Of a stretch of 64,000 nt of DNA, positions 3,690 through 53,014 are shown piece by piece. How positions within the stretch are numbered: position 1 is the first letter of the stretch; every line of letters begins with the position of its first letter. A model generated the notes under the pieces. The model was not told the DNA's origin and did not search any database. It saw nothing but the letters and a program-made list of their open reading frames with translations. The stretch lies in sequence record OM728297.1. One strand, given 5' to 3'. Position numbers and translations under genes: made by a program.

Positions 3690-3742
3690 TGAACTTCTCA
3701 TAAAAAGTTAGGAGAAAACCGTATCAAAATTTTTTTATAAAT

Positions 3743-3751
3743 ATATATTAT
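3743..3751 (+). promoter_or_regulatory. Early-type promoter motif ATATATTAT
   Basis: Intergenic, ~45 nt before ATG 3798. Confidence 0.65.
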
Positions 3752-3797
3752 AATTGGGATAAATGGTACAATTTATTCGAAAAGGAGAGAAAAAATT

Positions 3798-4547
3798 ATG
3801 GGGAGAATTTTTATGGAGAGTGAACAAGGGATTGTGGAAGTGGAAGAAAAAGGAAATATTTATGAATTAACTGAAATCATGAAAGAAAAAGGTAGATCAG
3901 TGAAACTTAAGAAAACACATTTTATGGAAAGAGATGAGTTAGTGAAGTCTATGGATTTTAATTTAGTATCAGATAGCGTTATTACTAATTTTGAATTACA
4001 ATTTTTAATTGGAAACAGTGATGTTGTTAATAGAAAAGATAGTGATATAGAATTATTTTTCCACAAAAGATTAAAAGTATTCCTAACAGAGATGTTAGTT
4101 GAAAAATTAACTAATAATGAAATTAAAGGTGCAACATATTCATTCTTTGGAAATATGGGAAATGAACATTTTGTATCACATATTGATAAAGTTCAAATTT
4201 TTAAAGATGAAAATAAAGCAAATTTTGTCTTCTCAAGTGTATTAGATGGGAAAATTAACAGCCTAGATGTTGATTTACATAAAATGAAAAATGAATTTCA
4301 TGTTGATAAATTATTCAATATTATGAATAATATTATTGGTGAAGATGTTCGTACTATTAATCTAAACTGTAGTTATAACACACTTAACAATAGACGATTA
4401 TTTAATGTAAATATGTTACCTCTACTTATTGGCTATAAAACTAGCACTACACAAACTGAAAATTATCTATGTACCTTCACAGTATTTGACATAAATCTTT
4501 GGAAGGAGCCATTTATGATAGATAAAGAGCTAGGAAGAAATATATAA
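3798..4547 (+). CDS. Hypothetical protein (paralog of 4566..5366)
   Basis: SD AAGGAG; C-terminal motifs shared with next ORF. Confidence 0.75.
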   Translation: MGRIFMESEQGIVEVEEKGNIYELTEIMKEKGRSVKLKKTHFMERDELVKSMDFNLVSDSVITNFELQFLIGNSDVVNRKDSDIELFFHKRLKVFLTEMLVEKLTNNEIKGATYSFFGNMGNEHFVSHIDKVQIFKDENKANFVFSSVLDGKINSLDVDLHKMKNEFHVDKLFNIMNNIIGEDVRTINLNCSYNTLNNRRLFNVNMLPLLIGYKTSTTQTENYLCTFTVFDINLWKEPFMIDKELGRNI

Positions 4548-4565
4548 ATTATTTAAATATGGGAG

Positions 4566-5366
4566 ATGAGTGAAGAAATGACACCAATGGAGGAATATAG
4601 AGGATTATGTAATAGTGAAAGCATTCTAAGTATTTTTGATAGAAACTATAGATTTAGCGTTTCTAGAAATATTAAAGGTTTTAGCTTCACTGAGTCAATT
4701 AGAAATCCCTATGGCAACAATAAGATGAACATCGGATCCCTTTCACAAGATAAAGAAGGCATCATTAATGTTATAGATTATAGTAGATTAGATAAAGAAT
4801 ATAAATTGTCTAATCAAGTGGAATATGAATTCTTTATTAAAGATGTGAGAACTATTAATAAAGATTTTAAACTTTATAAAATATTCTTCTATAATGTTAT
4901 TAGAGAAATGATATGGGAGAGAATAAAGGAAACTCAAACATTTGACGGTTACAAAATCCCAGATAACCTTGAAATTAACTTAGTTGATACAGTTAATTTC
5001 ATGAGTATTGACATTCCTTCAAGAATGGTGAATTTTGATGAGATTCATTATAGTTATGGTAGATTTAATGATTCTATTAGTATTGATTTTGAATTTGCTA
5101 ATAAATATATTGATTTAGATAAATTGATTAATTTAGTTAATTCTGGTATTGAAAATAAAGAGCTAATAGAAATAGAAATGTCTCTACATGCACATAGGAA
5201 CTTTAAAGATAATAGAGATGATTATTTATTTGATCTACCAATATTTATGAATTGCCACTCAGATCCAATAGACCCTAGAGATTCTAAGGAGGATTGGATA
5301 ACAACAATGGCTATATTTAGTAATGAACTATGGGATGGAAATTATGAAAATTTTATAAAAAAATAA
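4566..5366 (+). CDS. Hypothetical protein (paralog of 3798..4547)
   Basis: SD GGGAG; 266 aa ORF. Confidence 0.75.
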   Translation: MSEEMTPMEEYRGLCNSESILSIFDRNYRFSVSRNIKGFSFTESIRNPYGNNKMNIGSLSQDKEGIINVIDYSRLDKEYKLSNQVEYEFFIKDVRTINKDFKLYKIFFYNVIREMIWERIKETQTFDGYKIPDNLEINLVDTVNFMSIDIPSRMVNFDEIHYSYGRFNDSISIDFEFANKYIDLDKLINLVNSGIENKELIEIEMSLHAHRNFKDNRDDYLFDLPIFMNCHSDPIDPRDSKEDWITTMAIFSNELWDGNYENFIKK

Positions 5367-5412
5367 AAGGAGGGAGTGAGTACATACCGTACCCCACTGC
5401 CCTTCTTTTTTT
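5367..5412. terminator. Imperfect hairpin terminator
   Basis: aaaaggaggg...cccttctttt stem with T-tract between convergent genes. Confidence 0.6.
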
Positions 5413-9400: not shown

Positions 9401-9823
9401 TTATTTCATTTTACCCTTCATATTCAAGAGTGGTTTAAAATTAACTTTAACTGTTTTAATTTTACCATCTCTAGATCTATACAAAGCATATACAGTTCTT
9501 ATAGAACCTTTAGCTGTTGGACCTTCTTCTGTAATAACTACTTGACCATTAAAGGTTTTGAAATTTTGAGTTGAAATCTTAGTGAGTTTTCCTATAGAAA
9601 ATGTACTTTTCATACTACTTGAGAATACTGCTTTTAGTTCTTCTGAGTCTTTTAATTCATTAACACTTTTTACTGGTGTTAATCCTTTCTTTTGAGCCTT
9701 AGCATTTGTTTCTTTAAGAGCAATTTCAATAGCTTTTTTAAGATCAGGCGCTCCTTTACTTACACGAATTGCTTCATTAAACATAAATGAAGACTCAGCT
9801 AATTTTAACTGTTTTTCATTCAT
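9401..9823 (-). CDS. Basic hypothetical protein
   Basis: True start likely ATG 9823 (SD GGAGG), not the ORF-track 9937. Confidence 0.7.
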   Translation of the reverse strand: MNEKQLKLAESSFMFNEAIRVSKGAPDLKKAIEIALKETNAKAQKKGLTPVKSVNELKDSEELKAVFSSSMKSTFSIGKLTKISTQNFKTFNGQVVITEEGPTAKGSIRTVYALYRSRDGKIKTVKVNFKPLLNMKGKMK

Positions 9824-9846
9824 ATGAAAACCTCCAATATGTGATA

Positions 9847-9858
9847 TAATATATTGTT
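9847..9858 (-). promoter_or_regulatory. Late-type promoter overlapping an early-type motif
   Basis: Minus strand AACAATATATTAT contains both AACA-N6-TA and ATATATTAT. Confidence 0.6.
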
Positions 9859-9870
9859 TATGAAGAAGAC

Positions 9871-9882
9871 AACAATTAATTA
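9871..9882 (+). promoter_or_regulatory. Late-type promoter AACA-N6-TA
   Basis: AACAattaatTA upstream of HD-beta fusion gene. Confidence 0.65.
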
Positions 9883-9908
9883 TAGACTGGATAGGTAGGA
9901 GGATTATT

Positions 9909-11459
9909 ATGTCATTTTTTAAAGGTATTCGGAACATAGAAAGAGTTCAATATGATCTAGTACAATATTGTGACAAGGAATTTGTTCCAAAATTTATAGC
10001 AAGTCAAAATATTGATGAAGATAAATTATATGATACTATTGATTTTAGTTTGCAGTTAGCTGAAAAATTACATTTAGATTATAATATGTGTTTCACTATT
10101 GCAGTAATGCATGATTTTGGTTATATTGAAGAAGATGAAAATAATTTTAATACATTAATGAGCATAAAAGCAGATCAATTTTTGTTAAGATATTTTGATG
10201 GAAGTCAAATGGAGATTATTGAATCTGCTTGTAAAGAACACGATGGTACAAGTAGAGAAACAGGAATATTTACATCTTTATATTCAAAGGTTATTGCAGA
10301 TGCAGATAGGATGTCAATATTGAGAATTGAAGCTATGATTCGTCATTATTGGAAATTCTATTCTAATCAAAAGGCATTCTCTAATACAGATGAACGCCCT
10401 AACAAACTAACAGATAAAGAAATTTTTGATAAGATGTATAGTTTTCTAAAAAAAGAGTATGGTACAATTGTATCAAAAAATAAATTATTGTTAGAAGCAT
10501 CAAGAGAAATGATGAAAGATGAAATAGAGAATTCTAATAAAGTATTAAGCTCTGAAGAAGATACAAAAAGAATGGTTCTACATTTAGCTACTTATGGGGA
10601 AATCCAAATAAATAATGATGGAACGCTTACCGTAGAAAAAATAACTAAAGAGCCAATCAGTGAATCAGATCCTTTTGAATTATTTGAAAAAAATATAAAA
10701 GAGTCAGTAGATGAACAACTACTAGAAGCCGCACCAAAGAATCTATCAAAGAGACAAAAGGTAGAAGATTTAATATATAAGGTACTTTCAATTTTAGATG
10801 ATACTGGAGCTAACTTGAGAAAATATAAAGAGTTCTTTGGTAAAATGAATGATGAACAATTTGATAGATATATGAAAAAATTCCTAAAAGATGAAGATGA
10901 AAATTTTTATCTTGAAATTTTACCTAATAAAAGTGAACCTTCATTAAAGCAAATTAAAAAAGCACTAGATATCTTAAAAGTACCAACTGATGAATATGTA
11001 TATCTTCGACATGATGGTCATAAAAATGATCCTATTAGAACTGCATATAAAGTACCTGTTGGTTATATTACAATTAAGCGAGTACAACAAATTCTAAGTA
11101 AAAAGAATACTTATTCTCTTGATATTGCACAAAGAAACATGAAGAGTGGACAAGTTACAGGTAATGACAAAATTGCCAGAATATCTGATATTGAATCATA
11201 TAGTCTTGTTGCTATAGGAGCTGATAATGCTTTAAAAGAATTTCTTGGTCCAAGAGCAGATAACTCTGTAGCAAAGACAGATATGTATAAAAATATTAAT
11301 TTATATGGATATACTTATCTAAAAGATTTGGGTCATGATATTACTGAAAATCAAACTCTTAATACCATGTATGTATATCTAATGGGTGCTGGATTAGGGA
11401 ATGATTTATTAAAAGAGGATACTAATTTAGAAGAACTATTAGATAAAAAAGGAAAGTGA
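9909..11459 (+). CDS. rpoB: HD-domain / virion RNA polymerase beta C-terminal subunit fusion
   Basis: N-half has MHDFG...EHD...DADR (HD fold); C-half PVGYITIKRVQQ...GQVTGNDKIARISDIESYSL aligns to the beta C-terminal GxxYxxKL...GGQRFGEME region. Confidence 0.8.
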   Translation: MSFFKGIRNIERVQYDLVQYCDKEFVPKFIASQNIDEDKLYDTIDFSLQLAEKLHLDYNMCFTIAVMHDFGYIEEDENNFNTLMSIKADQFLLRYFDGSQMEIIESACKEHDGTSRETGIFTSLYSKVIADADRMSILRIEAMIRHYWKFYSNQKAFSNTDERPNKLTDKEIFDKMYSFLKKEYGTIVSKNKLLLEASREMMKDEIENSNKVLSSEEDTKRMVLHLATYGEIQINNDGTLTVEKITKEPISESDPFELFEKNIKESVDEQLLEAAPKNLSKRQKVEDLIYKVLSILDDTGANLRKYKEFFGKMNDEQFDRYMKKFLKDEDENFYLEILPNKSEPSLKQIKKALDILKVPTDEYVYLRHDGHKNDPIRTAYKVPVGYITIKRVQQILSKKNTYSLDIAQRNMKSGQVTGNDKIARISDIESYSLVAIGADNALKEFLGPRADNSVAKTDMYKNINLYGYTYLKDLGHDITENQTLNTMYVYLMGAGLGNDLLKEDTNLEELLDKKGK

Positions 11460-16223: not shown

Positions 16224-16247
16224 AAATAACTTTAAAGGAGTAACATA

Positions 16248-16706
16248 ATGGAAAATTTATGGGAAATGAATGATGAAATAGAAACTTTAAAAGATTCAGA
16301 TAATAATGAATATCTCTATCATATTACTGATAAAAACAATTTAGAAAAAATAATGAAAGATGGGCTTGATCCAACATCTAAAAAAGTAACAATAAATGAA
16401 CAGAATCTAATTTATCTTACATCAGACTATAATTTTATAATCGAAAATGATGATGAATTTTGGAGGAATGATTTAGTATTATTAAAAGTAATTATTAATG
16501 GAATTAAAGATAATTTAGAACCAGATTATGAGTATGATGTAGGTTTAGACATTAATGGTAATCCCTACCCAATTAAAGCTGTAACTTATGATAAAAAGAT
16601 TGATTCTAAGAGAATTTCAATTATTGGGGAACTTGAATTATACCCATTAGAAAATGTACCTTTTCCTATGTATCATGGAAAAATCAAAAATAAAGGGGAT
16701 ATGTAG
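16248..16706 (+). CDS. ADP-ribosyltransferase-fold protein (Tpt1/DarT-like motif pattern)
   Basis: YLYHIT..NL..I...GL.P, IYLT, VLLKV pattern. Confidence 0.55.
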   Translation: MENLWEMNDEIETLKDSDNNEYLYHITDKNNLEKIMKDGLDPTSKKVTINEQNLIYLTSDYNFIIENDDEFWRNDLVLLKVIINGIKDNLEPDYEYDVGLDINGNPYPIKAVTYDKKIDSKRISIIGELELYPLENVPFPMYHGKIKNKGDM

Positions 16707-19090: not shown

Positions 19091-21106
19091 ATGGATGACA
19101 TCAGTGTAATTAAGAATGAAGATTATGAAGGTTCACATAGATTTTTAGCAGAGGAATTACTAATGCCTAATGCAAATAAAACAGATGGTAATAGATCTAC
19201 AATGTTCTGCTCTCACTTAGCACAGGCAGTAACTCTACAAAAGGCTGAACCGCCATTAGTCTATACTAACTTTGAGAATCAAGTTGGAAAGTATTCAACT
19301 GCAGGTTATAGAAAAGCTAATAGTAATTATAAGGTTATTGAAAAAATTTATAAGAATGATTATAATTATGTACTTATTGTACAAGATCAGGAAACTGGGG
19401 AATATACATTATTTGAAAGAGCTGAATGTGAGTTTCTAACTGAACATTATGGTTTTCAATGGGATAACGATAAAATTGATTCATTAAAGAAAGATGATAC
19501 AATTGAAAAAGATACTGTATTATATAAGAATACCTGTTATGATGAAAATATGAATTTTGGCTATGGTGTTAATTTAAATGCTGCATATTTTAGTTATAAG
19601 AATGAAACATTAGAGGATGCTATTGTAATCTCTGAAAGTGCCGCTAAAAAGCTAGGAACATATAGTGTTAACAAAGTAAAAGTATCTGTCAATACAAATG
19701 ATATCTTGCTTAACCTATATGGTGATAATGAGAATTATAAAGGATTCCCAGATATTGGAGAGCATATTAAAAATCAGATTATTGCTAGCCGTAGAAGATT
19801 TGATTATAACACTGCATTATATGAATTAAAGAATCTAAATGAAATGAGAGATTCAGATACTCCATTCTTTGCTGATGGTAAGATTGTAGATATTGAGATT
19901 TTCTCTAATGTACCTGAAGAAGAATTAAAGGTACAGAAGTATAATGAACAAGTTCTATACTATATTAATAAGCAAAAAGAATTTTCTAATAATGTTTATC
20001 AAAAACTTAAAAAGATTGTAGAAGGTAAAGATAGTAATGTTTCAGACAAGCTATTGCACTTCTATAATAATTGTAAAATGAGAATTGATGAAAATATTTC
20101 TTACACTTATCAGAATAGTAAGTTTAGTGGTTTTATTATGGAATTCACAATTTTAGAGGAAGAACCATTAAATAAAGGAAGTAAGATTACAGGTAGATAT
20201 GGTAATAAAGGTGTAATTAGTAAAATACTCCCTGATGATCAAATGCCTACTGTGGCTGAAGGACGTTTTAAAGGACTCAAGGCAGACATTTGTCTTAATC
20301 CTCTTGGTGTATTTAACCGCCTTAATCCAAGTCAGTTGATCGAACAAGAATTAAACTGGATTGCTAAATTCATTAGAAAAGATATGGAAGAAGCAGGAAG
20401 TAATGAAGAAAAAGTTAGCATCTTACTTGATTTCTTAAATAGAGTGAATAAAGAAGAAACTGAATTAATGGAAGAATTCATTAATAGTTTTAATAAAACA
20501 GAATTAGAAGAGTTTCTAAATGATATTATTGAAAATGGAATTCCTATCTGTCAAAAGCCATTCTTTGGTAATATTGGTTTAGATGAACTTTGGGAATTAT
20601 ACGATCATTATGATCATATTGATTACTTTAAATGTGAGGGAATTAGTACTCCTTTAATTATTGGAGAAATTTATATGGTTAGATTAAAACATGAGCCGCA
20701 TTCTAAATTTAGCGCTCGTAGTACATCATTTATGAACCTAAGAGGTCTACCAGCTAAATCTAAGAACTTTAAAGAGCATAAAGACTTATATTCAAAAACA
20801 CCTGTACGTATTGGTAATATGGAGATTTCTAACTTAAGTCTTACCAATGAAATGGGTTCTATTATGGATATGCTAAATTCATACTCTAATAATGAGACTA
20901 ATAGAAGAGAACTTATTATGCAATTATTAACTGGAAATCCATTTGATACCAATATTGATCTTTCAGATGTAGAGTCAGGTACAAGTAAGATTCTTAAATC
21001 TTTATTCACATGTCTCGGTCTTTCTATTGATGATGTAGAAGAAGAATGGGAGAATAAACTAAATGGAAAAGTAGAGGATGAAAATAATGGGAGTGAGAAG
21101 AAGTGA
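19091..21106 (+). CDS. rpoB: Non-virion RNA polymerase beta subunit, C-terminal part
   Basis: EDAIVISES, GSKITGRYGNKG, LNPLG..RLNPSQ, IYMVRLKH, RIGNME; closely resembles AR9 nvRNAP beta-C as remembered. Confidence 0.95.
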   Translation: MDDISVIKNEDYEGSHRFLAEELLMPNANKTDGNRSTMFCSHLAQAVTLQKAEPPLVYTNFENQVGKYSTAGYRKANSNYKVIEKIYKNDYNYVLIVQDQETGEYTLFERAECEFLTEHYGFQWDNDKIDSLKKDDTIEKDTVLYKNTCYDENMNFGYGVNLNAAYFSYKNETLEDAIVISESAAKKLGTYSVNKVKVSVNTNDILLNLYGDNENYKGFPDIGEHIKNQIIASRRRFDYNTALYELKNLNEMRDSDTPFFADGKIVDIEIFSNVPEEELKVQKYNEQVLYYINKQKEFSNNVYQKLKKIVEGKDSNVSDKLLHFYNNCKMRIDENISYTYQNSKFSGFIMEFTILEEEPLNKGSKITGRYGNKGVISKILPDDQMPTVAEGRFKGLKADICLNPLGVFNRLNPSQLIEQELNWIAKFIRKDMEEAGSNEEKVSILLDFLNRVNKEETELMEEFINSFNKTELEEFLNDIIENGIPICQKPFFGNIGLDELWELYDHYDHIDYFKCEGISTPLIIGEIYMVRLKHEPHSKFSARSTSFMNLRGLPAKSKNFKEHKDLYSKTPVRIGNMEISNLSLTNEMGSIMDMLNSYSNNETNRRELIMQLLTGNPFDTNIDLSDVESGTSKILKSLFTCLGLSIDDVEEEWENKLNGKVEDENNGSEKK

Positions 21107-21422
21107 TTATCTAATTATTGGGTATGATATTGGTTATGACCAATATCATCCTGATAAGTATGATGAGTTTGAGGAACTCAATGAGATTAAAGAAGAAGGA
21201 AAATTAACTTATTTAATTGATTTTATGAATGGGGAATATTTCTTTGTAGGTGAAATTATAAAGTGTGACGAAGAAGGAATCAATGGGTTTGGTACAGTTT
21301 GTTTAGAAGAACATTCATATGAGTTTATTGATAGTAGGATGAGAGTGAAAAGATACATTAAAGAAAAATTTGGAATGAAAAATGTTTTACCAAGACTTTA
21401 TTTAATTAACCATTTTTCATAA
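21078..21422 (+). CDS. Hypothetical protein
   Basis: SD GAGG; overlaps end of beta-C. Confidence 0.7.
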   Translation: MKIMGVRRSDYLIIGYDIGYDQYHPDKYDEFEELNEIKEEGKLTYLIDFMNGEYFFVGEIIKCDEEGINGFGTVCLEEHSYEFIDSRMRVKRYIKEKFGMKNVLPRLYLINHFS

Positions 21423-21448
21423 TAATTCTTCTTTATATATCAACAGGA

Positions 21449-21637
21449 GTGAATGAAATGAGTGAACAAGAAAAAGAAATTAGATGGGTTGCTGATAATA
21501 CTATCTTTACCCATTTTACTTTTGGTATTCGTAATTTTAAGAAGATTCTAGAAGCTGTTTTAATTAAGTTAGATGGTCAATATGACACAAAATTAGTTCA
21601 AGATATAACTAGAGAAATTTATAATGAACAAGTATAA
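21449..21637 (+). CDS. Hypothetical protein
   Basis: SD AGGAG; start 21449 or 21458. Confidence 0.65.
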   Translation: MNEMSEQEKEIRWVADNTIFTHFTFGIRNFKKILEAVLIKLDGQYDTKLVQDITREIYNEQV

Positions 21638-22250: not shown

Positions 22251-22778
22251 ATGATAATTGAGAAAGAAGGTAACTTGCTTGAAGCTGAGGAAAATATAAT
22301 TGCGCACCAAGTAAATTGTCAGGGAGTTATGAGATCTGGTATTGCGTTACAGATTGCTAAAAAACATCCTCTTATTCTTAAAAAATATAAAGAAATTTGT
22401 AAGTCAACAAAGCCGGAAAATCTACTTGGTGAATGTCAAATTATTCTTGTATCTCGTAAATCTCCTTTTAGTGAAGAAGATGATTTATTTACTTATAATA
22501 GTACAAAATATTTTGTAAATCTATTTTCACAATTTGGATATGGTAATAAGGGAAGATATACACGATATTCTTATTTAAAAGAATGCTTAATAACACTAAA
22601 AGAATTTGCAAAACCTCATAATTTATCTATAGCACTTCCATATAAAATTGGTTGTGGAAGAGGTGGAGGAGATTGGATAAAAGTTAGAAAAATAATTAAT
22701 GATGTTTTTGATGATTATGATGTGACATTATATAAATTTGATGAAAGAAAGTTAGAGTCTCAATATGGAAAAAGATAA
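22251..22778 (+). CDS. Macrodomain protein (Poa1p/TARG1-like class)
   Basis: GNLL...IAHQVNCQGVMRSGIA...P and IGCGRGGGDW motifs. Confidence 0.85.
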   Translation: MIIEKEGNLLEAEENIIAHQVNCQGVMRSGIALQIAKKHPLILKKYKEICKSTKPENLLGECQIILVSRKSPFSEEDDLFTYNSTKYFVNLFSQFGYGNKGRYTRYSYLKECLITLKEFAKPHNLSIALPYKIGCGRGGGDWIKVRKIINDVFDDYDVTLYKFDERKLESQYGKR

Positions 22779-35104: not shown

Positions 35105-35911
35105 TTAAAATTGAATTAAAAGGAAATTATCAATTTCTTTTTTAATTTCATCTTCAATAAATAAAACAGCTTTACCATCTTCAGTATTGAAGCTAACTGT
35201 TTTACCATCTTCACCTAATTTGGCAGTTCTTTCATCTAAACCAAGATGATCAACTGTTGTTTTAATATTTTGACTCTCTTCCTTGATGTAATTAAGGATT
35301 TCATCTTGAGCCACTGACACCATTAGACCTTCATTAAGAATTCTCTTATTCATAGGATGAATAGCATCTTCTTTAATAATATTTGTCTGATAGGCATTAG
35401 AATGAGAAGGGAAGATTACCCAATCCCAAGTAACAATGTGAAGAGGTTTTTCAACTCGTGTTAGTCCATTCACTTTACGAGTAACACCACCAAGACCTCT
35501 CATTGAAAATGCTACTTCAGTACCTTGTCTAATTAAACCTTCCATATCTTTACCAACGGCAGTGTTAGTAGTTGCTACCACACCTTTTAGTAATTTTTGT
35601 TCCCACCATAATTTCTCAATAACATGAGACATTCTAGTTTGATCAATGTATGTCTGTCTTTCCATTTTATCAGACAATGGATGTCCGGCTTCCCCAAATA
35701 ATGATTTACGTCTTAACTTTTCTTGAATTTGAGGAGAACGAATAGCACCATCTAATGCTTCAAATGCATATTCCCTTCTATTTCTATTACCAGCTTCTGC
35801 CTCTTGAAGAATAGCTTCAATTACAACATTATCTTTATTATGCTCAATAATATTAGGTTTAACTGGTTCTGATGTAGATTCAATAATTAGAAAACCACAA
35901 TTTTGATCCAT
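35105..35911 (-). CDS. Prohead core protease (T4 gp21-like, peptidase S77)
   Basis: NRNRREY, FGEAGHP, FSMRGLG, TWDWVIFPS motifs. Confidence 0.9.
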   Translation of the reverse strand: MDQNCGFLIIESTSEPVKPNIIEHNKDNVVIEAILQEAEAGNRNRREYAFEALDGAIRSPQIQEKLRRKSLFGEAGHPLSDKMERQTYIDQTRMSHVIEKLWWEQKLLKGVVATTNTAVGKDMEGLIRQGTEVAFSMRGLGGVTRKVNGLTRVEKPLHIVTWDWVIFPSHSNAYQTNIIKEDAIHPMNKRILNEGLMVSVAQDEILNYIKEESQNIKTTVDHLGLDERTAKLGEDGKTVSFNTEDGKAVLFIEDEIKKEIDNFLLIQF

Positions 35912-37237: not shown

Positions 37238-38833
37238 ATGTCCGTAGAATATCGAACTAATCATTCAACTGGAACAACTGATGAATTCAGTCAAACATTA
37301 AAAGAAAGTCATCAATATTTCTTACAAACTCAACAAGTAAACATCCTTGGAGAAGGCTTCAGTGATGTTCTTTCTGAAGCATCCACTTTTAGTGCTTATG
37401 TAGATAAATTAGTAGAAGGCTTAGATGCAACTGAAGAAGCAGATATGCGTCAATTACTTGCAAACAACCGTCAAGCAATCCTTCAAGAGTCCGTAGTTGC
37501 AGGTATCCCTCCAATTGCGTCTCTATCTATGCCAACTATTCGTAAAATGTGGGCTAAGATTGCATTGAAATATGCTATTCCTACTGAACCTGTTAAAACA
37601 CCTGCTTTCTCTGTATCATTCTCTAAACCTTATATCATTGATTCAGTATCAGGTGAAAAACATTATCTTCCAGAATCTCTTCGTTCTTTAGATAATGGAC
37701 TTGCTGAAAAAACAAAACTTTCTTCTCAAGCTTATGAGCTACCTTTGGATAACAAAGATCTTCTTGCTGATGTAGGTGCTTCTGCACAAGCTGGAGATGC
37801 AATTGATCGCCGTTTCCATATTGTTGAAGTTGAAGTTTCTGCGGCAAGTGCAACTGGAACAGCTGAGACTGCTGAAACAGTTAAAGTAAAAGTTAACTCT
37901 AAAATTGATATTAACAACAAACTATATGCTGAAGTTAAAGCTAAACACTCTGATGGTACTGTAACTTCTGACGTACTTATGGGTGCTGTTGATCCAGAAA
38001 AAGGTACTGTTAGCTTAGTATCTCTTCGTCAAGCAGTTAAAAAAGTTGTATTCCTTGGTTATGTATCTTCTGAGGCTCATAACAGAGCAACTAACGTATC
38101 TTTCGATATTGAACGTAGAGATATCACTATCGGAACTGGCGAACACTTAGAGGCTTCTCTACCACTTGAAATGCTAACTGATACAATGGCACTTTATCAA
38201 ATTGATGGTGCTAATGAAGTGGTAGACACAATGTCTAACGTTACAGCTCAAAAAGTTGACCAAGAAATTTATAACTTTATTGATGCGGCTTTCCAATCTA
38301 ACCCTACTTATATGGGTAAATTTAACGTTCATCCTGCACCTCAGTTTGCTGGAAATCCTAGAGATTGGTTGGATGGTATCAAACGAGTAATTGATTACTT
38401 TGCTCAAAAAATTAAATCTGAAACTTACTACTACCAAGGTTACTTTGTAATTGTTGGGAACCCACTTGATACTGCTTTGATTCCAAATGTTACTTGGACA
38501 TTTAACCGAGTATCAGATGCTCAAAATGGTATTGAAGTAGATTACAGTATTGGAGCTGTTTCTGGTGCAAGCCGTTACACAATTGTTTCTTCTGACTTGA
38601 TTCCTCAAGGCGAATTGACAATGTTCATGGTTCCACTTACTAATAAATTTATGACGTTCAAGTACTATCCGTACACTTTCAATGTTGTACACAACTACCT
38701 GAACACTCGTAATCCTAATATTCCTTCCATTATGATGACTAAACGTCATACCCTTGAAGAGTTCCTTCCAATGGTATGCAAAATCAAAATTGAGAACAAT
38801 GATGGTACTCTTGTTTCTCAATATAATGGATAA
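37238..38833 (+). CDS. Major capsid protein precursor
   Basis: 531 aa; propeptide ending ILQE-S; gp23-like ITIG/LEAS and YYPY motifs; locus context. Confidence 0.85.
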   Translation: MSVEYRTNHSTGTTDEFSQTLKESHQYFLQTQQVNILGEGFSDVLSEASTFSAYVDKLVEGLDATEEADMRQLLANNRQAILQESVVAGIPPIASLSMPTIRKMWAKIALKYAIPTEPVKTPAFSVSFSKPYIIDSVSGEKHYLPESLRSLDNGLAEKTKLSSQAYELPLDNKDLLADVGASAQAGDAIDRRFHIVEVEVSAASATGTAETAETVKVKVNSKIDINNKLYAEVKAKHSDGTVTSDVLMGAVDPEKGTVSLVSLRQAVKKVVFLGYVSSEAHNRATNVSFDIERRDITIGTGEHLEASLPLEMLTDTMALYQIDGANEVVDTMSNVTAQKVDQEIYNFIDAAFQSNPTYMGKFNVHPAPQFAGNPRDWLDGIKRVIDYFAQKIKSETYYYQGYFVIVGNPLDTALIPNVTWTFNRVSDAQNGIEVDYSIGAVSGASRYTIVSSDLIPQGELTMFMVPLTNKFMTFKYYPYTFNVVHNYLNTRNPNIPSIMMTKRHTLEEFLPMVCKIKIENNDGTLVSQYNG

Positions 38834-41044: not shown

Positions 41045-43015
41045 ATGTATGATTATTCTACTAGAAACCTAAGTTTTATTAAGATCTGGAAGTTTCTAAA
41101 AGATCAAGGTATAAAAAATAATAAATTCTTTTTAAAATTAAATGATGAAACATTACAAGGTGTTGATCCATATGATCCAAATTTAACTGATGAACAAAAG
41201 GTAAGAATACAGGTTGAAGTAATGACTAACTTTTGGTATTTCTTGAGGGAAGTAGTGCGAATTCCTGAATCGGGTGGTTCTATTCATTTCATGCTACACA
41301 GAGCTAATCTTGGTCAAATGTTTCTTATGGAAAATAATATTGATATGATTGAAATACTGCCTCGTCAGAATGGAAAAACAATTGGGGCTGTATGTCGATA
41401 TATATGGGTATACCATTGGGCTACCAAAAATACTCATATGATTTTTAGTAATAAACAGTACGCCGATTCCCAATTAAATATTAAACGTTTCAATGATATA
41501 ACAGAATTATTACCAAGTTATTTAAAAACGCATTTAGATCCTAAAAAAGATACAAATAACTTAGCTCAAATTTCATGTGCAAAGAATAATAATAAAATTG
41601 ATGCAATGAGTACTGCTAGGACTGTTACTGACGCTGACAAATTAGGAAGGGGTTGTACTGTTCCCATCATCTGGTATGATGAATTTGCGTTTTTAAAATA
41701 TAATGATACGGTATACGCTAGTGCAGCACCAGCACTATCAAAGGCGTCAGAAGCCGCACAGCGTAATGGTACTCCTTATGGGAAATTAATTACAACTACA
41801 CCAAATGATCTTGATACAGAAATGGGTAAATATTGTAAGGGTATGATTGATGATGCATGTCCATTTGATGAAGCTTGGTATGATTGGGATATTGATGAAA
41901 TTAAAAAATATATTGAACAGAACTCTCGAAATGACTTTGTTTATTTAGTATTTAATTATAAAGAGTTAGGACATGATGACAAATGGTATCAAAAACAATG
42001 CCGTCAGCTCAATAATGACTTATTAAAAATTAAACGTGAAATATTATTGGAATGGACATTGGCTAACGATACTTCGCCTTTTTCAGAGGAACAATTAGCA
42101 GAAATTGGACAACATGCAGGTGAACCTATTGGTAAGTTTTATGTAATGAAAAGATATAAATTTGAAATTTTCAGTGAAATGCGAAATATATTTAAAAAAT
42201 CATGGCTGATCGGTATAGATATTGGAGCAGGTTTGAATCGAGATTTTACAGTGATATCTATTATTGATCCTAAAGATATGGTTCAAAAAGCAGTATTTAG
42301 AAGTAATAATATATCTTTACCTGATTTAAAAGATTTGGTTATACACCTAGTATTAGAATTTTGTCCTAATGGTGTCATTATTCCAGAACGAAATAACTTA
42401 GGTATCTCTTTAATACAAGATCTACTACGTTCAGAAGTAGCTAATAACTTATATTATGAAGTTAGAGAAGTAAAGGGAGAAAAGAAAGTTGATGACCCAA
42501 AAAGATCATCTAAAAAGACAGTTAAGACTAAAACAAGAGTTTATGGGGTTACTACTAGTAAAGATAGTCGGGATATAATGATCAATGAGATTCTTAGTAA
42601 TGCAGTTAATGATACTCCACATGTGTTTACAAGTAAATATATTTTTGAAGAATTAAGAACATTAGAAAGAAATAAGAAAGGAAAGATTGAACATAGGGAT
42701 GGAGGTCATGATGATACATTATTCTCATGGCTAGTGGCATGCTATGCTTTCTTATATGGAAATAATATAAATAAATTTGTTAAAGTCATCAGTGATGGCG
42801 ATAATAATGAGAATGAAGAAAATAATAAAGATAGAGCTAGAAATATTCATGCATTGTCTAAAATTAATAGTGGTGAAAAATCACAGAGTGAAATATTATT
42901 AGAAATGTATAAGAATGAAAGTAGATTCTTTGAAGATCATAATGAGAATGATAATAATATTAGAAAGCAAAAAAGAATGAAAAGCCTAAATTTTATTACT
43001 AGTTTAAATAGATAA
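41045..43015 (+). CDS. terL: Terminase large subunit
   Basis: PRQNGKT Walker A, IWYDEFAF Walker B, IGIDIG and HDD nuclease motifs. Confidence 0.9.
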   Translation: MYDYSTRNLSFIKIWKFLKDQGIKNNKFFLKLNDETLQGVDPYDPNLTDEQKVRIQVEVMTNFWYFLREVVRIPESGGSIHFMLHRANLGQMFLMENNIDMIEILPRQNGKTIGAVCRYIWVYHWATKNTHMIFSNKQYADSQLNIKRFNDITELLPSYLKTHLDPKKDTNNLAQISCAKNNNKIDAMSTARTVTDADKLGRGCTVPIIWYDEFAFLKYNDTVYASAAPALSKASEAAQRNGTPYGKLITTTPNDLDTEMGKYCKGMIDDACPFDEAWYDWDIDEIKKYIEQNSRNDFVYLVFNYKELGHDDKWYQKQCRQLNNDLLKIKREILLEWTLANDTSPFSEEQLAEIGQHAGEPIGKFYVMKRYKFEIFSEMRNIFKKSWLIGIDIGAGLNRDFTVISIIDPKDMVQKAVFRSNNISLPDLKDLVIHLVLEFCPNGVIIPERNNLGISLIQDLLRSEVANNLYYEVREVKGEKKVDDPKRSSKKTVKTKTRVYGVTTSKDSRDIMINEILSNAVNDTPHVFTSKYIFEELRTLERNKKGKIEHRDGGHDDTLFSWLVACYAFLYGNNINKFVKVISDGDNNENEENNKDRARNIHALSKINSGEKSQSEILLEMYKNESRFFEDHNENDNNIRKQKRMKSLNFITSLNR

Positions 43016-52506: not shown

Positions 52507-52791
52507 TTATTTATCTTTCCATTGAAGTCCAATATTTAAATTCACTTGTTTAGGTTTTAAGATAGTTATTGAATCCCAGTTTAAACCAAATTTAAACTCT
52601 TCTTTATTTGAAAATACTTTTACATTCAAATTTTTTAAGTTAACTAGAAATATTCTACTTGTACAACTATCATAATTTATCATCCATGCCATATCATCAT
52701 CTCTTACAAGGAAATAGCCGTCACTAATATCTTTAAATTTTAATTTTTTTGGTTCGTCTTTAGTAATTTTTAACTGAATTGACATACTCAT
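52507..52791 (-). CDS. Hypothetical protein
   Basis: SD GGGAG. Confidence 0.65.
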   Translation of the reverse strand: MSMSIQLKITKDEPKKLKFKDISDGYFLVRDDDMAWMINYDSCTSRIFLVNLKNLNVKVFSNKEEFKFGLNWDSITILKPKQVNLNIGLQWKDK

Positions 52792-52798
52792 TCTCCCT

Positions 52799-53014
52799 TT
52801 AATAGTCCTCTATCGGTTCACCTTCATAAAATCTAAAATATTCTGTAGCATAGGTTTCATAGAGACCTTTATCATTAGTAATAATAATTTGATTTACACC
52901 AGCATTTTCATGCACTAAATAAACTTTATTTCTAGTTAAATTAAATTCAGAAGTCTCAGCTACTACCAAATCGAGATCATTTACCGGTTTATTGTAACAA
53001 TTTCCTTTTTTCAT
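52799..53014 (-). CDS. Hypothetical protein
   Basis: SD GAGG. Confidence 0.65.
   Translation of the reverse strand: MKKGNCYNKPVNDLDLVVAETSEFNLTRNKVYLVHENAGVNQIIITNDKGLYETYATEYFRFYEGEPIEDY

Follow-up and report, generated by a model that had tools for sequence, protein, structure and literature searches.

The Bacillus phage vB_BsuM-Goe21 and its relatives AR9, PBS1 and vB_BspM_Internexus belong to the Takahashivirus jumbo phages; their DNA contains uracil, and each has two multisubunit RNA polymerases (RNAPs). In a stretch of 64,000 nucleotides (nt) of record OM728297.1 (the whole stretch analysed, hereafter 'the window', to which all positions refer), we examined the Goe21 gene Goe21_00920 (9909..11459, plus strand), whose product joins an HD-fold domain to the beta-C subunit of the virion RNAP (vRNAP). 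For the AR9 orthologue AR9_g078 (RefSeq BI022_gp077), the GenBank note, which draws on virion proteomics, describes an HD family phosphohydrolase and virion RNAP subunit that is proteolysed, with virions containing the RNAP domain only. Gp078 is grouped with the late-expressed vRNAP subunits in the AR9 transcriptome paper, according to which late-made vRNAP must stay inactive until packaging and no jumbo-phage vRNAP has been purified (PMC5312081). The same HD/beta-C fusion was described by Iyer et al. 2021 (PMC7824862), who called the HD domain 'active'. The fusion is therefore already published for AR9 and PBS1, and removal of the pro-domain is already on record for AR9. The reading presented below is supported, yet not new, and our additions to it are useful but incremental: a conserved cleavage module, a predicted site, ligand loss under purifying selection, a diversity of passengers and an intron-less allele.

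Processing of head proteins is best described in T4, 201phi2-1 and SPN3US. T4 capsid-targeting sequences (of IPI-III and Alt) are N-terminal segments ending in I/L-x-E that are removed by the S77 protease after prohead entry, and T4 gp21 cuts Alt at ITE-6 and LTE-619 (PMC5694885). Some beta-C homologues resemble these proteins in having just 9-34 amino acids (aa) ahead of the site, but the part removed in Goe21 would be 273 aa long and include a folded domain, and many beta-C homologues have no segment of this kind at all. Long propeptides that the prohead protease takes off are usual in jumbo phages: those of SPN3US head proteins measure 111-254 aa, and the vRNAP beta of 201phi2-1, a different vRNAP subunit from the one considered in Goe21, has a 275-aa N-terminal propeptide (PMC5694885). 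As proposed here for Goe21, the T4 gp21-related proteases of these two phages cut after x-x-E motifs; additional sites within the propeptides are thought to aid fragment clearance (PMC5694885). The two proteases prefer A/S/G/T at P3, whereas P3 in Goe21 is L/I/F as in T4; unlike the HD domain of Goe21, a recognisable enzyme fold is not described for the 201phi2-1 and SPN3US propeptides in the texts consulted. In SPN3US, none of the vRNAP subunits enters the prohead until all five have assembled, a process for which beta-C is essential (PMC5694885).

Against this background, we consider it probable that Goe21_00920 encodes a 60 kDa beta-C precursor whose worn-down HD pro-domain and linker are cut off in the prohead, and that the pro-region is not kept in the virion. 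Beta-C, one part of the five-piece vRNAP, would be made late as this precursor and would enter the prohead, most likely within the pre-assembled polymerase. There, the S77 prohead protease (35105..35911, minus strand) would cut after E273, and probably also at upstream I/L-x-E sites, which would leave a mature beta-C of 243 aa while the pro-region is lost from the virion. Removal of the HD domain during head maturation, as put forward in the original prediction, agrees with the record for the AR9 orthologue (99 per cent nucleotide identity), for which late expression, proteolysis and a virion location of the RNAP part only have been demonstrated. The evidence for proteolysis consists of the AR9 GenBank note and of reviews, at the level of domains. 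From sequence, we infer the exact site, the responsible protease and the loss of catalytic competence.

Gene and domain layout

The target region of the window is 100 per cent identical to Goe21 (OM728297.1), and AR9, PBS1 and Internexus match it at 98-99 per cent nucleotide identity. The AR9 gp078 and PBS1 gp269-272 orthologues retain this identity over their exons and have equal domain order, neighbours and ligand pattern. The coding sequence (CDS) is complete (516 aa, 60.0 kDa) and its ATG at 9909 lies 6 nt downstream of a Shine-Dalgarno sequence, AGGAGG (9897..9902, plus strand), read directly from the DNA. All parts of the product are encoded on the same strand. An all-helical domain with an HD fold of the YpgQ/YedJ type occupies residues 1-230 (9909..10598). 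It is followed by an acidic, disordered linker (residues 231-273, 10599..10727; isoelectric point [pI] 4.2), which is modelled with low confidence and was delimited by the predicted local distance difference test (pLDDT), motifs and composition. The predicted cleavage between E273 and A274 (codons GAA/GCC, 10725..10730), placed by the motif found in homologues, would release residues 274-516 (10728..11456) as mature beta-C (243 aa, 27.9 kDa, pI 8.7). In the Goe21 record, the product is labelled merely 'hypothetical protein', and PHROGs splits it into a 'hydrolase' (residues 1-422, E = 7e-267) and an 'RNA polymerase beta subunit' (residues 280-501, E = 2e-40).

The C-terminal beta-C subunit

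The C-terminal part had been predicted to read, from about residue 281, like the stand-alone beta-C of phiKZ-type vRNAPs, and both profile and pairwise comparisons bear this out. The match to PHROG 3233, the 'RNA polymerase beta subunit' family, begins at about residue 280 and covers profile positions 3-223 of 225. PhiKZ gp149 aligns over its whole length (residues 1-224, E = 2e-18) with residues 278-501, its Met-1 falling on L278; gp149 has 224 aa and is annotated 'RNA polymerase beta subunit; structural head protein'. Both gp149 and its SPN3US counterpart gp218, likewise a virion head protein homologous to residues 278-501, have no pro-region, and gp218 is listed without a processing site (PMC5694885). 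By tblastn, the beta-C domain was found in 161 phage records, including phiR1-37 g203 and jumbo phages of Pseudomonas, Erwinia, Salmonella and Staphylococcus. The jumbo-phage beta-C family has been assigned to the C-terminal part of bacterial RNAP beta (PMC7824862), and phmmer gave a weak but co-linear match to residues 1150-1308 of Escherichia coli beta (E = 0.04). One 240-aa beta-C homologue (P0220) bears the source name 'NADH dehydrogenase subunit G', which is probably a mis-annotation.

A conserved predicted cleavage site ahead of beta-C

The linker was singled out in the original prediction for its clustered I/L-x-E sites. All of these are present: ISE-S at residue 250 (10656-10664), LFE-K at 258 (10680-10688), IKE-S at 263 (10695-10703) and LLE-A at 271-274 (LLE, 10719-10727), together with a VDE. 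Five [ILVF]-x-E sites in 31 linker residues are modestly above chance (p ~0.01 with two kinds of shuffling).

Conservation of the last of these sites among homologues is far stronger evidence than the cluster in Goe21 alone, and it points to LLE-A, the motif to which particular attention had been drawn. We gathered ~125 beta-C homologues and located in each the start of the conserved domain, K-R-K-K-x-E-x-L. In stand-alone homologues (237-258 aa), the initial Met lies 2-11 residues ahead of KRKK. All 30 longer homologues, with extensions of 15-639 aa, have [ILVFYM]-x-E-[ADSVETG] within the last 16 residues of the extension, and in every one of them the junction Glu stands 5-9 residues before KRKK. 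The same motif occurs in 21.5 per cent of the other 16-residue windows of these extensions, and the binomial probability of finding it in 30 of 30 by chance is ~1e-20 if relatedness is ignored. The junctions follow the general pattern h-[LF]-x-E/[ADS], with h a hydrophobic residue. Typical ones are I-L-N-E-A-A, I-L-T-E-A-P and I-L-S-E-A-A; that of Goe21 is Q-L-L-E273-A-A-P, and that of Staphylococcus phage SA1 is V-L-N-E-A-A. Many extensions, including that of Goe21, carry one or two further copies of the motif just upstream.

Sequence comparison thus suggests that the maturation cut would be made between E273 and A274 by the S77 prohead protease of the phage. The predicted products are an acidic pro-region of 32.1 kDa and the basic beta-C, which equals the stand-alone homologues in size and whose new N-terminus, A274, would lie 4 residues before L278. 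Across the window, a strict version of the motif, [ILVF][LFI][NTSL]E[AS], shows no enrichment (3 matches against 2.9 expected). It is also fitted by L-L-L-E-A-S within the HD domain (aa 193-197, 10485-10499), which lies in a predicted helix and whose Glu is not conserved in the homologues P0002 or P0003; this match is probably coincidental, but it could be a secondary cut.

The product of 35105..35911, the presumed processing enzyme, matches Pfam Peptidase_S77 (the T4 gp21 family, E = 8e-14) and a PHROG for head maturation protease. Sites of this type also occur near the N-terminus of the major capsid protein precursor of the T4 gp23 type (37238..38833, plus strand), in which L-K-E at aa 21-23 (37298-37306) is conserved in 119 of 120 homologues and I-L-Q-E/S at aa 81-85 (37478-37492; L-x-E at aa 82-84, 37481-37489) in all 120. 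The capsid propeptide is likely to be cleaved at these two sites, which makes S85 a candidate for the mature N-terminus. We rejected the capsid V-L-S-E/A (aa 44-48) as evidence of a similar junction, as its Glu is replaced by Asp in 74 of the 120 homologues.

The HD domain: fold, ligand loss and selection

An HD-hydrolase pattern had been noted in residues ~1-230, and H68-D69, H111 and D131-A-D133-R134 are all at the positions then cited. Pfam HD (PF01966) matches residues 45-136 with E = 0.0024 and 18.6 bits (18.6-20.1 across runs), under the gathering cut-off of 22 bits, and a search of NCBIfam returned no family for the N-domain. An exhaustive phmmer search with residues 1-275 retrieved 163 relatives, mostly stand-alone proteins of 200-240 aa, and 35 of the 40 sequences aligned match Pfam HD. 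Compared with the Protein Data Bank (PDB), a profile of the N-domain family matches 2pq7 (E = 6e-13), E. coli YedJ (3gw7, 1e-11) and Bacillus subtilis YpgQ (5dqv, 4e-8). Because of this transitive homology, HD membership is secure despite the sub-cut-off Pfam score.

Structure prediction led to the same assignment, where the absence of an HD fold in the N-terminal half would have spoken against the original prediction. The AlphaFold2 model (from an 86-sequence alignment, mean pLDDT 74.9) has a confident all-helical domain at residues 1-230, with pLDDT mostly >85 over residues 1-150; pLDDT falls to <50 at 244-250 and 263-278, and beta-C starts confidently from 281. Each of the top 13 Foldseek matches of this model in the PDB is an HD hydrolase from the YpgQ/YedJ group (probability 0.97-1.00; template modelling score 0.44-0.58 on the target), with E-values of just 1e-3 to 1e-1. 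The N-terminal half thus has an HD fold whose ancestor was a YpgQ-like enzyme of cells, and its closest stand-alone relative sits in an ordinary bacterial chromosomal neighbourhood.

The fold and detectable sequence homology are shared with the YpgQ/YedJ phosphohydrolases (PDB 5DQV, 3GW7 and 2PQ7), but much of the polar core is not. Fourteen polar positions are conserved in at least 80 per cent of 35 stand-alone relatives (in Goe21 numbering, D32, H35, H39, H68, D69, R75, H78, H111, R112, S114, D131, A132, D133 and R146), and at these Goe21, AR9, PBS1 and Internexus all read S I K H D E N H D T D A D H. The four phages keep six (H68, D69, H111, D131, A132 and D133), and in Goe21 the other eight, D32, H35 (to I), H39 (to K), R75, H78 (to N), R112, S114 and R146, are lost; the substitutions include the first His ligands, the third His and the R and S of H-R-x-S. 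The complete H...HD...D metal-ligand set is therefore absent from Goe21, in which H68-D69 and D131/D133 are kept and the first His positions are I35 and K39. The suspicion that the domain lacks its first metal-binding His and the usual His pair, and may be degenerate, was well founded.

Sister lineages have shed yet further ligands, and other ones. P0001 and P0002 have D133V, and P0003, P0004 and P0005 have HQ or HE for the HD dyad and N or F for H111; P0003, P0004 and P0001 gave no match to Pfam HD. By comparison, P0011, P0007 and P0010 keep all 14 positions. The ligand-poor domains form one clade with 100/100 support and a long stem branch. Comparison of the four close phages gives, for the HD part, 9-15 synonymous differences against 0-1 nonsynonymous ones. 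With so few nonsynonymous changes, the domain is not decaying but under strong purifying selection, which indicates that the pro-domain has some role. The substitution pattern fits the loss of an ancestral catalytic site, contrary to the label 'active' in the literature, and the HD domain is probably a constrained module that is either non-catalytic or re-purposed.

Other passengers ahead of beta-C

In relatives, beta-C is preceded by other domains. P0005 (836 aa) combines a degenerate HD domain with P-loop kinase-like and GNAT domains, and P0178 has a GNAT domain. P0011 (886 aa), from a phage contig with similar gene order, has a transglutaminase-like domain, an HD domain with intact ligands and further sequence. 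The intact HD domain of P0011 groups with P0009 and P0010, outside the degenerate clade (98/94 support), and because of this placement an HD domain was probably recruited to beta-C more than once; a single origin of all beta-C-fused HD domains is unsupported by the tree.

The Staphylococcus phages SA1 and UFV_DC4 have beta-C precursors of 679 and 677 aa (L015 229-2268 and L016 535-2568), labelled just 'hypothetical', whose extensions have no Pfam match. The SA1 precursor opens with a zinc-ribbon-like segment (CxxC...CxxC), and the sites L-N-E, I-L-E and V-L-N-E/A stand in tandem before its KRQE. In the virion proteome of UFV_DC4, a dataset too shallow for this purpose, the beta-C orthologue was undetected. 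BpSp (gp148, P0175, L003 2237-3352) has a 237-aa extension with no detectable HD signal: BLASTP was not significant, hhalign gave a probability of 1.6 per cent and there was no match to Pfam HD. We therefore rejected it as a third HD-bearing example; a review counts BpSp among the HD-bearing phages.

In the metagenomic sequence L007, a degenerate HD-like open reading frame (ORF) of 223 aa (47-718) is followed, with a 4-nt overlap, by a 456-aa beta-C precursor (715-2085) consisting of an unrelated domain of ~210 aa, a linker and beta-C. The split may be genuine, or a frameshift in the assembly may have produced it.

What the pro-domain may do

The proposal of a pro-domain discarded in the prohead has to be weighed against several observations. 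The evidence for processing stems from AR9 and not from Goe21 itself. Beta-C without a pro-region is packaged in many related phages, and that of SPN3US is unprocessed, so loading does not in general require the pro-domain, which argues against its being the general signal for loading. The passengers of relatives have unrelated folds, which argues against one shared inhibitory mechanism, and the HD-like protein of L007 is a separate ORF. Finally, H68-D69, H111 and D131/D133 survive under purifying selection, which makes a modified active site possible, and Iyer et al. 2021 labelled the domain 'active' (PMC7824862).

An active enzyme could serve in one of two places. In the cytoplasm, the HD domain could be a late nucleotide (pyro)phosphohydrolase, for example in the nucleotide economy of dU-DNA, and be fused to beta-C for co-expression only. 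The label given by Iyer et al. (PMC7824862) would suit such an enzyme, as would the strong purifying selection, the retention of the HD dyad, H111 and D-A-D, and the presence of the nucleotide pyrophosphohydrolase YpgQ among the closest solved relatives. It is made unlikely by the disappearance of eight of the 14 family-conserved polar residues, the first His ligands included, by sister lineages with HQ or HE in place of the HD dyad, N or F in place of H111, or V in place of D133, and by Pfam, whose cut-off the Goe21 N-domain fails to reach and whose HD family does not match P0003, P0004 or P0001. Moreover, the gene belongs to the late class, and the classical thymidylate-excluding activities of PBS2 are early ones. 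The other place is the next host, into which the HD domain, freed in the capsid, might be ejected with the DNA to hydrolyse (signalling) nucleotides, an alternative raised in the original prediction. Relatives do fuse plausibly active enzymes at this position (the intact HD of P0011, the GNAT domains of P0178 and P0005), a folded domain of 27 kDa cut inside a closed shell cannot simply diffuse out, and in T4 a protease of this family also processes the ejection proteins (PMC5694885). However, the AR9 GenBank note has the RNAP domain alone in virions, the Goe21/AR9 HD domain is without the first His ligands and a further six residues that the family conserves, and the tandem sites fit propeptide clearance. 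Ligand loss and AR9 proteomics together lead us to regard an injected enzyme as distinctly improbable.

Proteolysis itself could be dispensed with if translation started internally to give the RNAP-only virion species, while the full-length protein were a separate cytoplasmic product. A TTG at codon 303 does have GGAG ahead of it. Yet no ATG, GTG or TTG occurs between codons 255 and 302, and internal initiation therefore cannot make a complete beta-C; a start at 303 would delete the conserved first helix (281-296) present in every stand-alone homologue. Such a start also leaves the conserved L-x-E/A motif unexplained, and the AR9 depositors call the protein proteolysed. We rejected this explanation as extremely improbable.

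For the discarded pro-domain, we suggest, with little confidence, that it may act before or at maturation as a non-catalytic module, for instance by holding new vRNAP in a precursor state or by aiding assembly or loading, and not as an injected enzyme. Because late-made vRNAP needs silencing, a gate that controls its assembly or activity is an attractive, if speculative, idea. In a broader and rather doubtful version, the beta-C N-terminus would be a general protease-released loading site in Firmicutes jumbo phages, and the HD domain of the AR9 lineage a pseudoenzyme that selection retains because it gates vRNAP assembly or activity until cleavage. It is similarly doubtful that, at such a loading site, the conserved acidic segment ending in h-L-x-E/A would couple HD, GNAT, kinase-like, transglutaminase-like, zinc-ribbon-like and unknown domains to the polymerase. 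If true, this would answer how late-made vRNAP avoids mistimed transcription of early genes. A cleavable precursor subunit offers a direct experimental handle on vRNAP assembly, late silencing and loading, in that the cut can be blocked or moved and loading and timing followed.

Introns and annotation

AR9, PBS1 and Internexus have two group I introns in this gene, at aa ~412-415 and 451, within the RNAP part, and the Goe21 copy is uninterrupted. The empty site of intron 1 lies at 11143..11151 (plus strand), where the blastn alignment breaks at CDS nt 1235/1243; the AR9 insert matches Rfam Intron_gpI with 85 bits. The empty site of intron 2 lies at 11259..11261 (plus strand); where this intron is present, in AR9, PBS1 and Internexus, it contains an ORF for an HNH endonuclease. 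The length of intron 1 is 335 nt in both AR9 and Internexus, but the PBS1 copy has 1259 nt and includes an HNH ORF. Intron 2, with its HNH ORF, is 1213-1427 nt long; in L001 they occupy 3736-4070 and 4183-5395. The BpSp gene is split at the same intron-1 site. At default thresholds, Rfam showed no intron in four loci, and a focused scan detected it. The Goe21 allele is a natural empty site that defines the AR9/PBS1 exon junctions exactly.

These introns bear on annotation. Exons 1 and 3 are annotated separately in PBS1 (L005 3001-4272 and 7031-7234), both as 'hydrolase', and in Internexus (L006 3001-4272 and 6077-6310), as 'putative hydrolase' and 'hypothetical protein'. The exon 1 ORF of PBS1 and Internexus reads through into the intron and has 423 aa. 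PHROG 23439, 'hydrolase', with its 423 positions, appears to have been built on such read-through ORFs, and its name would hide the RNAP part. Our analysis corrects the annotation of Goe21_00920, of the split genes of PBS1 and Internexus, of PHROG 23439 and of the 677-679 aa orthologues in Staphylococcus phages.

Other features of the window

Goe21 also lacks insertions in two other genes of AR9. The AR9 prohead protease gene is a two-piece join with a 358-nt insertion (window 35672-35684 against L009 23070-23427), and its large terminase gene is a five-piece join with ~1.4 kb extra (window 41642-41803 against L009 29400-30792). Conversely, four Goe21 insertions of 360-470 nt, at 16239-16690, 21097-21458, 22318-22685 and 52526-52994, are without an AR9 counterpart. 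The G+C content is ~25-32 per cent across the whole window.

Upstream of Goe21_00920, a mechanically called ORF of 178 aa on the minus strand (9401-9937) runs 29 nt into the start of the gene. The AR9 and Goe21 records give this ORF a later start, as a virion protein of 140 aa (window 9401-9823). With this later start, 85 nt of intergenic DNA separate the two divergent genes, and the late promoters of both should lie there.

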